Shown here piece after piece: positions 3,901 to 45,237 of a stretch of DNA of 64,000 nucleotides. Location of the stretch: contig OZ037772.1 of NCBI GenBank assembly GCA_964035545.1, positions 3,687,538 through 3,751,537 of the forward strand. Direction: 5' to 3'. The notes beneath the pieces are model-generated. The model saw only the letters and a list, made by a program, of their open reading frames with translations. It was not told where the DNA came from and made no database searches. Numbering within the stretch: the stretch's first letter is position 1; the number at the start of each line of letters is the position of its first letter. The translations under genes were made by a program, and so were the position numbers. This DNA comes from Bugula neritina (taxonomy: Eukaryota; Animalia; Bryozoa).

Positions 3901-6900
3901 TGAGATGTGATATGAGGACTGGCTGTAAGGATGAGACAGGTATTTACTTGCTGTTTCTATTTCTGTAGAAAGAAACTGAGAAATATTACAAGAACCTGTT
4001 TATTATTTTATTATTAAAGTGAGTTATGCAACAGTAAAAGAGGAAGTCAGTTTGTCAGCATTAAGGTTTGTGTGAGACAGAAGTGGATAGTGCAGGAGTT
4101 GATATTCTCACTGTTATGTTGAATATTTAGTATATTTCATCCTTCAAGTGTCTGTTTCTTTGATAAGATGGTATAGGCATAGCTTTAACTCAGTGGTGTC
4201 TCACCTTTTTCATACCATCCTCCTTTTTATGATTATTTTCTATTAAGTTTCCGCCTCTTTGATAAAATTGTAATTTCATTTATAAAGAATATCTGGGACA
4301 GGTTGTTTTCCTAATAATTCATTGAGTGTAGAAAAAAGCACTTTATGTTTGACATGAATTAGTGTCTGCCACAGCTTCAGTTCAGCTTTGAAAGCAGTGA
4401 TGCTGGTATTAAAAGCAGTGAGTTGATAATTATACTCATTCATTTTAGGTTCAGAGTTTTTAGTACAGCAAATATATCTACTAGGTATGCAGTAAATAGT
4501 TTGTGGCGATCAGTTCGACTGACTGCAAAAACTTCCTGTTTACTTTCAATAAATCTTTTAGCCTCCATTCGTAGTAGGAGGGGTAGCAGCTAGAGTAGAG
4601 TGAATATTAGGCGCATGGATGTAGAAGTAAACTTAGATTGTAGAGTGTAATGTGGATAAATAAATGAACTACATAAAATGAAGGAGTTATAATTATACAT
4701 ATTCATGTAACCTGGAACACAAGGCAAGAGCTCAAAAAGCTGATAACAAACTCTGTGAAATTTTAGAAATGAAAACCCCTAAAAAAGCTCAAATTTCCTG
4801 TGAAGGGGAAATTCCCCAAGGTTGAGAGCCACTGCTTTAATTTTTTCAACTATTTCATTCCAAGTGCAGTGATTAATGAGCTAACCTCTGACATCTTTCT
4901 AGTCCAACCAACTGTCTAGTTATCACATAGTATGTGTATAGTGATACATCATCTACCTGTAGGTACAGGTAGTAGGTGTAGAATAAGTACAATATCATAT
5001 CTATAATAATGCTTTTATAAATAGTGTGATTTTATGTATACAGAGGAGACAGTAGCATCCCATGACTTGGCATCTTTGATTGATTTGTCTTGTGAGTTAC
5101 GAGAAAGTCTGACTGGTGGAATAGAGACTCTGTCTGAGAAAGTTGCAGAGTTGAATGACATCTCAAAGGATGCCTGGAAAGAACTGAGTAAAATAGAAGA
5201 TGAAGTGAAGAAGATGGTTGCCAGAGTAAACGCTGTAGCTGACGCTCAGGTATGCTGACATGGTGATGCCATGTAATATTATTTCTGTTTGTCTGAAATT
5301 GGAATTTGCATTTGGTCTTTGAGTTGTAATCAGAAATGAATTTTATTTGCCACTAGAATTAACTGGCCATTAAAGTATTATCATTCTGTGTAAAAGTAGC
5401 AGTAGTCATTCATCACATGTTACTCAGTGCAGAGGAACCTGTCAATACAGATGACTCACTCATCCTTCTGCAACTGTCATCACTCACACAGAGAGGTTGG
5501 CTGTGTGAGTGATTGACAGGTGTCAGGAGGAGGAGACTAGTCACGTGATGTACTAGCTCTCTGCTGTGTATAGAGTGTCACGTGACTGAGTCATTGTCCA
5601 CTCAGTGGGTGATCTGTCACTTTCATTTCGAGTGCAGAGGTTGTGAGGTGCAGATGTGGTTACACTGTGTTACTATTTATTAGATAGAAGAGATTAGAAA
5701 GAGAGCTACAAACCTGAGGCTAGAAATATATGGATATTTGAAGAGCTGCACACAGATAGTGGATAATTATAGAATAGAGCTGGCCTTGAGTAAGACGATG
5801 GGCAGACAGTCTCTGCTGGACACAGTACAACATGCAGTTGATAAGTTCAATGATGCAGGGATTGTGAGAGACTACAAAGAGATGAGTGAGAAGGTGGAAA
5901 AGGCTACAGATATTGGTGTAATAGAGAAGTGTGTACTTCCAGACAGCATCTTGGTACCAACATGTAGGTGGAGTCTATAAATAGTAACACTAACTATAAA
6001 TAACTTTCTGCTTGTAATCATGTGAGTTGCTTTCACTAAATATTTAAATAGTAGAATAAGTAGATAGAGTTTATTTATTAGAGAATTGAGTTTTGTTCTA
6101 CTCTCACATTATGAGACATTTCTGCAGTGTTTCAGAGTTTATGATGTATAAGTGAGCTGCTAAACTGTGTCATGCTGACTACCTGCTGTCAGTATTAACA
6201 AGATATTCTCACTCAGACCTGTGCATCACGTAGCAAATTGTAGTAACTACAGACTGCTTGTATTTAAAACATTTTTTCATTTTAAGTTTGAAAAGCTGTC
6301 CCACCTCCTCAGGTGATGAGATTCTCAAGTTATAGAATTGTTATTTTGTTGTTGCAGACAGTGAAGACAGTCTGGGACTGAAGCTGCTGCAGCCACCATC
6401 TTCTCTACAGTCTGATGGACTTCCTGTAGGTGACTCGTGTTACACAGTAAACATCTCAGCTGATGGACATCTGATGTGTTGGACAGGAGAAGGTGTAGAA
6501 GTAATAAATAGAGACACTCTGGATACTATCAGCTCAGTGGAGGACACCAACACTACATGGTGGTGGGAGATAATCCAACCTGAAGGGGTGATGGTTGGCT
6601 GCTGGTATAACAGGAAGGAGGACACAGCTGAATTCTCACTTCTTGATCCGAATTCCTTTGAGAAGACTCGCTCCCTCTACAAGCAGTCAGTAGATAGACC
6701 CACTGACTATAATATAGCTCAGCACGACTCACTGCTCTATATTGTAGACAAGAGAGAGAAACAGCTGGTAGTATGTAACCTAGTTGACAATAAGATACAG
6801 AAGTTCCCACTTCCTGAGATGGAGGACCCTCACTCTGTATGCATCCTCCCAGACTCAACTCTCCTCTTAGGAGACTCTACTGTAGATGGTAAAGTGGGAA

Positions 6901-8192
6901 GATATAAAGTGGAGAACACAACTCTCTCTCTAATGTGGGAGTTTCCTCACATCTCACGACCAACTGGTATTTCCTTTGATCCAACATCTGAACTGATTCA
7001 CATCTGTACAGTGAGAGGACCTCTCCTCATCCTCTCACTTGAAGGTAAATACTCTGTTTATTATAGTAAGTCTAGTTATTTTATATATAGTATAGTTATG
7101 TTGTAGTAAATAATATATTTTAATAATTAACAGTAAACAACTTCCACTCATAAGATATATTATGATATTGTTAGTATTTATCAAGTCACTGATGTTATTT
7201 TTAGCTAAAAGTTATGTAATAAAGACTGTAACATGCTGATAGTAGATGTTATATTCTTCATCGCATGACTTGTAGCTAATAATAATATTAGTGAATAATA
7301 CTGCCTCCCTGCAATAAGTTTATTTCCAGCTGCAGTAACATGCAGGATGTAAGCACAGGTAAAAGTGTATATTATATTGTATAGGTTTAAGGTGTACTCT
7401 GTGCAGTGTGCAGTGAGCTCTTAGTAAACTCTCTATTCAGTCTTCCTTTCCAAGGGTTCACCTGGTAGTGTAGAGGATAGGGACTCCACACTGCTAAGTG
7501 AGTTGGTGCTGCAAGGGGTTCAAACCCACCTATCAGCATGTCTAGTTAGTATACTATGCAAGTGTTTTACACTAATTTTTGAGGTGCTCAGTCTAACAAC
7601 TGTGCAGACTGCCAGCTACACATGAGTTATGAGTTGTAGTTTAACTTCAGTCTAGTGCTGCTGTTGTTTTAGTCATCAGATAATTTAAATATGAATAATT
7701 TGATACTTTCTGACTGCCATTACTGAGACTATGTAATTTGATGATGGCTGGTAGAGCAGTGTTTGCTGGTGGGACTCAGGTGGCTGTGGTTGGCTCTTGT
7801 CAAGTATTTAATATGTGATAATGTTGGAGTAGCTGCAGTAGTAGTAGTTAGAAGTAGACATGTGGGTGTGTTCTTGCTCAGAGCCACAGGCTAAGTTTGT
7901 GGGTCAAGGTCAATACAGTTGTATAATGAGACACTATTTTCTGCTCTGTTAGAATATTTACTTCATGCATGTAACCTGCTTAGTTCCATCTTTAAAGGCA
8001 GTCTGTCTGTTTCTCTCAATACACACCAACTGATACAATATGATGCTATTATTTACAGGTCAACTGGTGCTTACTGTTCCCAGAGAAAGTCTTGGTGTGA
8101 GTAACTGGGTGAATGACATTGCTGTGTATAACAGAGACACAGTGTTTCTAGCATGTGATGATGGACTGAGAAGATACACAATAAAATACTAA
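908..8192 (+). CDS. TRIM-family E3 ubiquitin ligase (RING, B-box1, B-box2, coiled coil, C-terminal beta-propeller), apparently intact, 619 aa
   Basis: Coding exons 908-1089, 3372-3552, 3750-3939, 5044-5249, 5684-5963, 6358-7044 and 8059-8192 all have GT-AG borders and matching phases (1860 nt, ATG to TAA). RING: CGYC..PRTLPCLHVYCMRC..CAYCR. B-box1: CDVC..FCLES..LCQQHQENH. B-box2: CEHH..CSKC..FCMRC. Exons 4-5 are helical. Exon 6-7 has propeller-like blades (PHSVCILPDS, PTGISFDPTS, VNDIAVYN). AATAAA at 8367. Confidence 0.9.
1396..1896. mobile_element. Degenerate non-autonomous hAT (Charlie/Buster-like) element in TRIM intron 1
   Basis: Ends with AGGTTGGGAACCACTG. The left part (CCAACCTTTTTCATATCATCCCC) and the right part resemble 4191-4834 and 44150-44373. 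Confidence 0.6.
2672..2780. repeat. (TA)n microsatellite
   Basis: Directly visible TA run. Confidence 0.95.
4191..4834. mobile_element. Non-autonomous hAT DNA transposon in TRIM intron 3
   Basis: Terminal inverted repeats CAGTGGTGTCTCACCT / GGTTGAGAGCCACTG and an 8-bp TSD CTTTAACT / CTTTAATT (1 mismatch). The interior resembles the transposase remnant near 43950-44040. Confidence 0.75.
7459..7545 (+). mobile_element. tRNA-derived SINE head (degenerate)
   Basis: A-box-like TAGTGTAGAGG and B-box GGTTCAAACC at Pol III spacing; no complete cloverleaf. Confidence 0.45.
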
Positions 8193-44373: not shown

Positions 44374-45059
44374 AGCAAGACATGTAAACATGAATATTAC
44401 CAAGTTCATGCATTGCTAGTTACTAGACTGTTGGGTTACAACTTACAATATTTGTAAGCTGAAGAGCTATTAATAGAGATGATGGTAATGCAGTATAAAT
44501 TAGTCAGTCTATTATCATGAGTTAGTCACTGCTAATATTATGCTATGCAATGGCTAACAGTCACATAGCAACTTACAAATAATTCTACTATTTATTATGA
44601 TTATGACATCTGTGATGAGGAAATAAAATGTGCCTTTACATACACATCATATTTTGTGTAAACAAGTGTTTAAATACAGTTGAACATTTGGTGTTCGAAA
44701 TTTGTTTTTTTTTTCAAATGTTAATAAAATACAAATCAAAAAATATTTTTCAATAAATAATAGTAAATTATGCTGAAGAACTAATGTGGACTTGTAGAAT
44801 AAGTTCGCAAGAGAAGTAACTCCTGATTAACATGATTAAACAGTCACAATAATATTCCTGAAAGATTCCTAGAGCCTAAAGTTCATACACTATTGTGATG
44901 CAGTAAGTATTCTATAGAGTTGGTATTGATATCACAGTACAATTAGGTCATGAGCTATCACCAGGCATCAAGTTTTTACCTCCACTGGTGGAGTAATCTT
45001 AGGGCTGTAAATAATGGCCACTGTAAAGTAGCCATATCCAAAAACTCAGTTTTCTAACC

Positions 45060-45237
45060 ATCTCAACTGATGGACATGTGATGTGTGTGACACGAGGAGG
45101 TGTAGAAGTAATAAATGGAGACACTCTGGATACTATCAGCTCAGTGAAACACATCAACACTACATGGTGGTGGGAGATAATCCAACCTGAAGGGTTGGTG
45201 GTTGTTAGTTGGTATAACAGAGCGGAGAAAACAGCTG
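45060..45237 (+). pseudogene. 178-bp internal fragment of the TRIM propeller exon from another paralogue
   Basis: Gap-free match to 6453-6630, reading ISTDGHVMCVTRGGVEVINGDTLDTISSVKHINTTWWWEIIQPEG..WYNRAEKTA. No flanking TRIM sequence. Confidence 0.92.

Follow-up and report, generated by a model that had tools for sequence, protein, structure and literature searches.

Hypervariable codons in the predicted NHL-like propeller of an expanded TRIM gene array in Bugula neritina: a putative repertoire of intracellular non-self sensors

Canonical TRIM-NHL proteins, among them TRIM2/3/32/71, Brat, Mei-P26, LIN-41 and NHL-2, are few and slowly evolving developmental regulators, and the top face of their propeller binds RNA. 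In the WD40 propellers of the Podospora HET-D/HET-E/NWD proteins, each blade has a few hypervariable positions on the interaction face. Among TRIM genes, the SPRY-bearing members (group 2) show dynamic, fast evolution and are absent from invertebrates, and the NHL class belongs to the ancient, conserved group 1 (Sardiello et al. 2008, PMC2533329). For fungal NLRs with hypervariable propellers, PMC12222747 and PMC13449251 treat the theme of concerted evolution and reshuffling. In the literature searched, we found no description of a hypervariable TRIM-NHL array.

The TRIM array of the bryozoan Bugula neritina has counterparts in each of these systems. Like primate TRIM5alpha/TRIM22 and the teleost finTRIM/btr arrays, it shows tandem, lineage-specific amplification of a predicted RBCC E3 scaffold, with conserved N-terminal modules and apparent positive selection focused on surface loops in the recognition domain at the C terminus. 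Unlike TRIM5alpha and the finTRIMs, in which that domain is B30.2/SPRY, the Bugula genes end in a predicted NHL-like propeller, appear to retain B-box 1 and belong to an invertebrate, with a higher copy number (at least 90) and higher identity between copies outside the variable sites. The resemblance is one of evolutionary pattern, and the array is not a member of the TRIM5/finTRIM group. The predicted order of domains (RING, B-box(es), coiled coil, six-bladed NHL-type propeller) is that of the canonical TRIM-NHL proteins, but the Bugula family is amplified about 100-fold and hypervariable on what is probably one face. As in the Podospora NWD NLRs, highly conserved repeats or paralogues differ at few hypervariable positions per blade, on the presumed interaction face, and this goes together with concerted evolution and reshuffling. 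This likeness is in evolutionary mode only: the Podospora proteins, from another kingdom, join a NACHT NLR to WD40 repeats, whereas the Bugula genes join a putative RING E3 ligase to an NHL-like propeller. The fungi shuffle variation between the repeats of a single gene, and Bugula between about 100 separate genes.

We analysed a 64,000-nucleotide stretch of contig OZ037772.1 (the window, whose positions are used throughout; all features lie on the forward strand). It holds a seven-exon TRIM gene (908-8192) with AG/GT sites at its splice junctions, encoding 619 amino acids. Exon 1 (908-1089) carries the start codon and the RING finger and ends at a GT donor; Pfam matches within 908-1090 exceed the cutoffs for both zf-RING_UBOX (PF13445, 31.6 bits, cutoff 25.2) and zf-C3HC4 (PF00097, 23.0 bits, cutoff 21). 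Exon 2 (3372-3552; a linker, then the first half of a putative B-box 1) and exon 3 (3750-3939; the rest of B-box 1, then a putative B-box 2) have AG/GT splice sites, with a continuous frame through exon 2. Their zf-B_box (PF00643) scores, 13.3 bits (E 0.1) and 22.6 bits respectively, fall below the gathering score of 24.1; the translations do display Cys/His spacing. Exons 4 (5044-5249) and 5 (5684-5963) encode a putative coiled-coil region, followed in exon 5 by a linker; exon 4 has weak Pfam matches to the helical or coiled families SlyX, Prefoldin and bZIP (E 0.007-0.1). Exon 6 (6358-7044) provides propeller blades 1-5, and exon 7 (8059-8192) the last blade and the stop codon. The protein has no hydrophobic segment, signal peptide, membrane segment or filamin domain; Pfam shows no SPRY/PRY match in it, the C terminus being the propeller, and no NACHT or WD40 match in any exon.

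RNA-type sequencing runs contain GT..AG joints that confirm three introns: 5249|5684 in X1 and X14, and both 5963|6358 and 7044|8059 in X1, X2 and X14. All three joints are absent from X16, a run of flat depth taken to be DNA. The end of exon 3 is matched by loose ends of RNA-type contigs that join to 5040-5044. Reads were matched at 90% likeness or better, so these joints demonstrate transcription and splicing of the TRIM family, not specifically of the window copy.

Pfam assigned no family to the propeller exon, and the NHL model PF01436 gave no match to it at E values up to 1. A 33-sequence profile, by contrast, matched the NHL-type propellers Pizza (E 2.7e-10) and PknD (1rwi; E 5.6e-5). 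An AF2 model of exon 6 (pLDDT 85.4, pTM 0.81) is all-beta with 19 strands, equivalent to 4.75 blades, and Foldseek matched it at probability 1.0 to propellers including the NHL domains of Mei-P26, Thin and Brat. The model covers exon 6, the sixth blade being assigned to exon 7, and the variable clusters of the two exons form six pairs. Modelling and profile matches thus support a C-terminal domain that is probably an NHL-like six-bladed beta-propeller.

The earlier note on this sequence had proposed a lineage-expanded RING-B-box-CC-propeller family, and the genome bears this out. The propeller exon has 135 matches. About 93 are open over the full length, at 51-87% identity, and about six have stops. 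At least 90 TRIM paralogues are intact, rather than one or two, and about 64 of these lie on the first 4.7 Mb of OZ037772.1. Our statement of RING conservation is based on identity tallies across the genome, in which 53 places encode exactly the amino-acid sequence of the RING exon (100% identity) and about 24 more reach 93-98%. Codon and divergence analyses used the window gene's 30 closest paralogues, in which splice sites are kept in 28 to 30 of 30, depending on the site; they covered the introns and the coiled-coil and propeller exons. Introns are 95-99% identical to those of the window gene (Jukes-Cantor distance among paralogues 0.038-0.056, about 4%), and exon 6 is 89-95% identical. As judged from these comparisons, the family comprises about 100 near-identical genes in an array that appears to have been recently expanded or homogenised.

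The propeller departs from the rest of the gene in its pattern of substitution. Among the paralogues, exon 6 has dN 0.076 and dS 0.064, against 0.016 and 0.039 in exon 4 (28 paralogues) and 0.013 and 0.033 in exon 5. The coiled-coil exons, our control, gave omega of about 0.4-0.5 (0.48) with 2dlnL of 8.8, whereas the one-ratio model (M0) placed the propeller exon at omega 1.66 (p=2e-7 against 1). The earlier note had suggested diversifying selection in the propeller, and the M7/M8 comparison that it named agrees: 2dlnL is 682, with 10.6% of sites at omega of about 12. Comparisons of M1a/M2a (648) and M8a/M8 (644) concur, and 57% of propeller sites lie at omega 0.07. These values come from our own implementation of the site models, in which the topology is fixed, branch lengths are proportional and recombination is ignored; recombination is clearly present and can inflate likelihood-ratio tests. 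Four sub-segments of exon 6, each on its own tree, were nevertheless all significant (2dlnL 80-190), and exon 7 gave 2dlnL of 100 for M1a/M2a. Between recent duplicates, exon 6 differs about 7-14 times more than its flanks, compared over roughly 2.9 kb (Fisher p between 3e-4 and 7e-15), through 38 non-synonymous and three synonymous codon changes. On these substitution patterns, we conclude that the hypervariable propeller codons are very probably under strong diversifying selection.

These codons number about 25, roughly four per blade. The 21 in exon 6 start at 6435, 6441, 6480, 6486, 6489, 6558, 6564, 6612, 6621, 6687, 6696, 6738, 6750, 6753, 6825, 6831, 6876, 6882, 6957, 7011 and 7014, and the four in exon 7 at 8103, 8106, 8112 and 8157. 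Their pN is 0.42, against 0.035 at the remaining codons; a single site holds up to 12 amino acids, with 6-fold enrichment in Arg and Trp and 3-fold in Tyr. The transition/transversion ratio is 0.79 and changes fall mainly at codon positions 1-2, which together rule out CpG hypermutability, or a hotspot blind to codon position, as the cause. The sites recur every 44 residues, the posterior autocorrelation likewise peaking at lag 44, and in every blade they sit in the B-C loop and at the entry of strand A, the innermost one; positively selected sites are all within or beside loops. The clustering of sites raised in the earlier note is thus found as a periodicity, once per blade and on one side of the strand topology (19 of the 21 exon-6 sites, P=3e-5). 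Placement of the variable residues on one propeller face would follow from predicted secondary structure and the NHL repeat register rather than from three-dimensional coordinates. Hypervariable haplotypes are all distinct among 30 of 30 genes, and the four-gamete test fails for 34% of the informative pairs of sites, a pattern indicating that recombination or short-tract gene conversion in all likelihood moves variants from copy to copy.

Attention had been drawn to this family by a comparison of the exon-6 segment 6453-6630 (exon-6 residues 32-90, protein residues 379-437, blades 1-2) with a second copy at 45060-45237. The alignment is as described, gapless over 59 codons with 15 amino-acid changes, one silent difference (AGG/AGA) and no stops, but it carries no sign of selection beyond chance. 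The 22 nucleotide differences in 16 codons resolve by the Nei-Gojobori method into 18 non-synonymous and four synonymous steps (pN 0.129, pS 0.106, ratio 1.2, Fisher p=1.0), and the codon-level chance of at most one silent codon in 16 is 0.12. Nor is the second member a family copy in the sense intended: similarity is limited to 183 nucleotides (6448-6630 and 45055-45237, 87%) between unrelated flanks, and the orphan has no acceptor site upstream and is not part of a gene. This fragment (family D16) lies in an intergenic repeat specific to the array (44560-45690, as aligned to other copies), which is 91-97% identical over about 1130 nucleotides to four other places on the contig holding the same fragment. 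Counting that of the window, at least five copies exist, with one truncated copy besides; about 15 further copies of the repeat's left part are without the fragment, and every copy of either kind sits within the TRIM array.

The closest functional paralogue sampled differs from the orphan at 13 of 177 nucleotides. Fifteen of the 22 differences are states found in other functional paralogues; the other seven, at residues 34, 63, 77, 78, 80 and 86, are private to the orphan lineage. Because most of these residues are invariant in the 29 other genes, the private changes point to decay of the orphan, which is a non-functional exon fragment incidental to the mechanism proposed below. None of the seven recurs in any of those 29 genes, and we reject the orphan as a conversion donor. 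The clusters of change noted earlier, at exon residues 41-44, 61-63, 77-81 and 85-88, are confirmed; WTGE/VTRG marks true hypervariable sites, but VMVGC/LVVVS is mostly orphan decay.

Relaxed constraint in a pseudogene family or dead fragment, with no selection for diversity, would account well for the orphan, which lies within a repeat without an acceptor site, has private changes at otherwise (nearly) invariant sites and shows a pairwise ratio indistinguishable from 1. Extended to the genes, we give this explanation, which the earlier note had named as the alternative, almost no weight. Intact copies number at least 90 with omega above 1 and clustered sites, open full-length exons far outnumber those with stops, splice sites are kept and spliced family transcripts exist, and more than half of the propeller sites are strongly constrained; the hypervariable codons reach a pN ten times as high as the divergence of the introns, beyond any neutral rate. 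An artefact, in which gene-conversion tracts or local hypermutation are misread as selection and the diversity serves no binding function, has more to commend it, but we still consider it highly improbable. Even at distances within 20 nucleotides, 25% of site pairs are incompatible, the tree is star-like with low support, differences between recent duplicates are nearly all states already present in other paralogues, some of them occupy neighbouring codons (110-112), as expected of templated conversion, and each amino-acid state is mostly encoded by a single codon. Random conversion, however, predicts only about a 2-fold exon excess (7.5% versus 4% donor divergence), and 7.5-14 fold is observed; the 38:3 ratio of recent pairs is higher than that of donors across the family (p=0.02). 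Positions 1-2 also change far more than position 3, transversions predominate, and a periodicity at structurally equivalent positions of the blades would be unexpected for a sequence-driven hotspot. Conversion is the likely supplier of variants, but selection is needed as well, since conversion alone leaves unexplained which variants are kept.

Diversifying selection might instead serve allorecognition or some other conflict, whether conspecific or genomic (fusion/rejection, gamete, transposon), rather than pathogen sensing, a reading that we regard as unlikely. Matching runs come from symbiont, biofilm and marine metagenomes, suggesting a marine, possibly sessile animal. In every public run, at most 32% of the 31-mers of the exon are present, and several letters specific to the window gene are missing from all contigs of four runs; both are compatible with strong variation between individuals, although contigs cannot show such absence. 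On the other hand, the TRIM protein lacks a signal peptide or membrane segment, whereas the known allorecognition determinants of animals are surface molecules. A repertoire of about 100 paralogues is also closer to immune-receptor arrays than to a few hyper-allelic loci.

We favour, with good confidence, the view that the array is a germline-encoded repertoire of E3 ligases with diversified propeller faces, putative intracellular non-self sensors. Each gene would encode a cytosolic TRIM-type E3 ubiquitin ligase ending in an NHL-like propeller, the variable face of which may bind ligands; recognition would be coupled to ubiquitination, as in TRIM5alpha and the fish finTRIMs. Recombination or short gene conversion would reshuffle the variable codons, giving a unique combination to each gene sampled. 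By analogy with these systems, we infer a ligand-binding role for the variable face and an intracellular non-self receptor function for the family. Should the variable face correspond to the RNA-reading top face, the array may comprise about 100 germline-encoded, sequence-specific readers of RNA (or viral protein) fused to a ubiquitin ligase, a more speculative and doubtful proposal. If true, it would give an invertebrate an intracellular 'variable receptor' system against viruses or transposons, in which new specificities arise by templated micro-conversion among array members and are kept by selection.

The array sets a fast, immune-type mode of evolution on the supposedly conserved NHL-type scaffold of an invertebrate, against the two-group division of TRIM genes. 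It would combine an invariant, predicted catalytic end with a probable receptor face of antibody-like Arg, Trp and Tyr usage, and would form a convergent third case beside the TRIM-SPRY and fungal NLR-WD40 repertoires. Defined hypervariable positions on a known fold could make it a tractable system for asking what intracellular repertoires recognise. A word search with the propeller, using a length filter that leaves out full-length proteins, returned metagenome open reading frames at 53-82% identity, and its matches in the ESM Atlas are generic bacterial NHL/SGL propellers.

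The earlier note had compared segment 6453-6630 of exon 6 in the window's TRIM-type gene with an orphan propeller-exon fragment at 45060-45237. Re-alignment, ungapped and with both translations free of stops, reproduced its count: 16 of 59 codons differ, 15 changing the amino acid and one silent (AGG/AGA). These amount to 22 nucleotide changes, with six of the codons carrying two each, which Nei-Gojobori path counting resolves into 18 non-synonymous and 4 synonymous steps (pN 0.129, pS 0.106, ratio 1.2, Fisher p=1.0). Counted by codon, one or no silent change among 16 has a probability of 0.12. 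The count stands, but the excess of amino-acid change does not, and this pair is a weak test of selection.

A search of the 216-Mb genome with the propeller exon gives 135 matches, a lower bound. Likewise as lower bounds, about 6 matches carry stops, approximately 64 copies sit within the first 4.7 Mb of the contig that holds the window, and smaller clusters occur on four other contigs. The lineage-expanded TRIM-propeller family proposed from the window alone is well founded, with at least about 93 full-length open propeller exons (51-87% identity) rather than one or two copies. The protein sequence of the RING exon recurs unchanged (100% identity) at 53 places, and with 93-98% identity at about 24 others. 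Outside the propeller exon, some paralogues look damaged: in loci L003 and L030, exons 4-5 cannot be aligned or have been replaced, the terminal exon has a premature stop in L006, and a stop replaces its last sense codon in L021; the propeller exon is open in all four. At G000:C8, 6.63-7.16 Mb, at least 20 further propeller open frames make up a second, distant array, with 23-26% identity to the window array and RING exons at 35-39%. The genome contains several separate TRIM-propeller arrays.

Joining seven exons with AG/GT borders (908-1089, 3372-3552, 3750-3939, 5044-5249, 5684-5963, 6358-7044 and 8059-8192) gives 1860 nt and the 619-aa protein reported earlier, in which no hydrophobic segment was found. 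Pfam detected the RING over threshold and B-box 2 slightly under threshold, and gave no match to exons 6 and 7, which encode the 273-aa propeller. A profile of 33 exon-6 sequences matches NHL-type propellers (Pizza designs, E 2.7e-10; PknD, 5.6e-5). The AF2 model (pLDDT 85, pTM 0.81), which leaves out the last blade, is all-beta with 19 strands; its Foldseek matches are propellers, including the NHL domains of Mei-P26, Thin and Brat, and the Atlas neighbours are NHL/SGL propellers. In three RNA-type sequencing runs, read depth is piled on exons and GT..AG joints fall exactly at 5249|5684, 5963|6358 and 7044|8059; no such joints occur in a flat-depth run of unrecorded type, taken as DNA. Spliced transcripts of the family exist, at family level and not necessarily from the window copy, because reads were accepted from 90% likeness. 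Several letters specific to the window gene, at 6623, 6773, 6822, 6834 and elsewhere, differ in all contigs from four public runs, and at most 32% of the propeller-exon 31-mers occur in any one run. Other sequenced individuals may lack the window copy or allele through copy or allele turnover, although contigs cannot prove absence. The metadata of the runs indicate a marine animal.

We aligned the 30 paralogous loci most similar to the window gene, taking in the propeller exon and its 1.5-kb flanks. Introns and coiled-coil exons are 95-99% identical to those of the window gene, and exon 6 is 89-95% identical. Mean pairwise dN and dS are 0.013-0.016 and 0.033-0.039 in coiled-coil exons 4 and 5 (ratio about 0.4), and 0.076 and 0.064 in exon 6 (ratio 1.18); introns have a mean pairwise JC distance of 0.038-0.056. 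Codon models were fitted with our own GY94-F3x4 likelihood program, using a fixed IQ-TREE topology, proportional branch lengths and no explicit recombination model; its M0 likelihood (-4934.9) agrees with that from IQ-TREE (-4929.5). The diversifying selection that the earlier note had suspected in the propeller is borne out among these paralogues, with an M0 omega of 1.66 for exon 6 (p=2e-7 against 1) versus 0.48 for the coiled-coil control. For exon 6, 2dlnL is 648 for M1a versus M2a (selected class about 10% of sites, omega about 12), 682 for M7 versus M8, the comparison that the note had put forward (10.6% of sites, omega 12), and 644 for M8a versus M8. The coiled-coil exons give 8.8 for M1a versus M2a, and exon 7, with an M0 omega of 1.00, gives 100 and four selected sites. 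When four segments of exon 6 were analysed on separate trees, all were significant (2dlnL 80-190) and returned the same sites. The 21 exon-6 sites with posterior >0.9 have a pooled pN of 0.42 and pS of 0.17, and the remaining 210 sites 0.035 and 0.051.

With exon-6 residue 1 at window position 6360 (add 347 for the protein number), the hypervariable sites are residues 26, 28; 41, 43, 44; 67, 69; 85, 88; 110, 113; 127, 131, 132; 156, 158; 173, 175; 200; and 218, 219, together with exon-7 residues 15, 16, 18; and 33. The autocorrelation of the posterior has a period of 44 residues, that is, one blade. Against the predicted strands, the sites occupy loops s2-3, s6-7, s10-11, s14-15 and s18-19 and the entries of strands s1, s5, s9, s13 and s17, with none in the loops of the other propeller face; 19 of the 21 exon-6 sites lie on one side of the predicted topology (P=3e-5). 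The NHL repeat register, read from motifs like P-x-G-I-S-F-D and then L-I-H-I-C-T, suggests that s1, s5 and their equivalents are the innermost A strands. By propeller topology rather than coordinates, the two series of sites would correspond to D-A entries and B-C loops, on the 'top' face where propellers canonically bind ligands. Residue use at these sites is skewed towards Arg (6-fold), Trp (6.6-fold) and Tyr (3-fold), as is typical of binding hot spots. Five related metagenome ORFs from other samples (P0009, P0013, P0032-P0034) have long insertions in the loop that joins blades 2 and 3, beyond exon-6 residue ~110, and one insertion is an Asp-rich run; in the array, this same loop is hypervariable and indel-prone.

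Could mutation or gene conversion produce this pattern by itself? Transversions outnumber transitions at hypervariable codons (ts/tv 0.79, versus 1.14 elsewhere), and changes there are mostly at codon positions 1-2. Recent duplicates allow a tree-free test of the 687-nt exon 6 against about 2860 nt of flank. L018/L028 have 10 exon and 3 flank differences (14-fold excess; 9:1 non-synonymous to synonymous codons), L015/L029 have 31 and 10 (13-fold; 20:1), and L002/L010 have 9 and 5 (7.5-fold; 8:1). The excess is significant (Fisher p 3e-4 to 7e-15), and the pooled codon ratio, including L008/L009 (1:0), is 38:3. The base spectrum, the codon-position bias and this test argue against a mutational artefact. 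In the same duplicates, most alternative states are already present in other paralogues and some changed codons are adjacent; the four-gamete test fails for 34% of informative site pairs, and still for 25% of those within 20 nt of each other; and the hypervariable haplotypes are all distinct in 30 of 30 genes. From these sequence patterns, short-tract conversion or recombination very probably supplies and reshuffles the variants. Random conversion would account for only about a 2-fold exon excess, and selection must therefore decide which variants are retained.

The array is consistent with a germline-encoded set of cytosolic E3 ligases whose recognition face has been diversified, a function that we wholly infer. 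TRIM5alpha and finTRIM share its evolutionary mode, but the window family lacks SPRY and is not a member; fungal HET-E-type NLR propellers evolve alike, but the family lacks NACHT-WD40 and is no member of that group either. Its architecture is that of TRIM-NHL proteins, which have been treated as a conserved class, with the dynamic SPRY class described as missing from invertebrates (PMC2533329). Our literature search found no description of a hypervariable TRIM-NHL-type array.

The orphan's similarity to the gene has sharp edges (6448-6630 and 45055-45237; 183 nt, 87%) with unrelated flanks. The orphan lies within a repeat: about 500 bp on each side match, at about 91-97%, four more sites of this contig where the same fragment is present; one further copy is truncated, and the left part recurs in about 15 more, fragment-free copies. 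Every copy found is inside the TRIM array. The closest functional paralogue sampled differs from the orphan at 13 of 177 nt. Fifteen of the 22 gene/orphan differences are states present in other functional paralogues; the other seven, at residues 34, 63, 77, 78, 80 and 86, are private to the orphan lineage, mostly at positions invariant among 29 other genes. The signal originally read from this pair is thus about two-thirds inherited family variation and one-third orphan decay. Given the repeat setting, the lack of an acceptor site and the private changes at mostly invariant positions, the orphan is a dead, duplicated exon fragment. There is no sign of it donating sequence, as its private changes appear in none of the 29 other genes sampled.

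A second orphan, at 11785-11972, is an inverted copy of the terminal exon (8047-8234; 188 nt, 90% complementary) about 3.5 kb downstream of the window gene, with more short inverted pairs around it (7732-7943 versus 12348-12561). An inverted repeat of about 0.9 kb, 10578-11455 versus 41254-42135, aligns in three collinear pieces (93-95% complementary); its two arms, 30 kb apart, probably each represent a copy of one mobile or array-unit element. Minisatellites at 12478-16300, 18122-18512, 26698-28300, 29273-29856 and 39239-39490, all distinct (units of 19, 43, 11, 16, 23, 13/26, 17 and 18 nt), make up much of the intergenic space, and one of them yields a spurious 166-aa ORF at 14390-14890. 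The region 51813-56204, with direct repeats (52031-52333 versus 55489-55812; 88-96%, 3458 nt apart) and, after them, an ORF at 55839-56204 that contains a CCHC zinc-knuckle motif, looks like an LTR-retrotransposon remnant.
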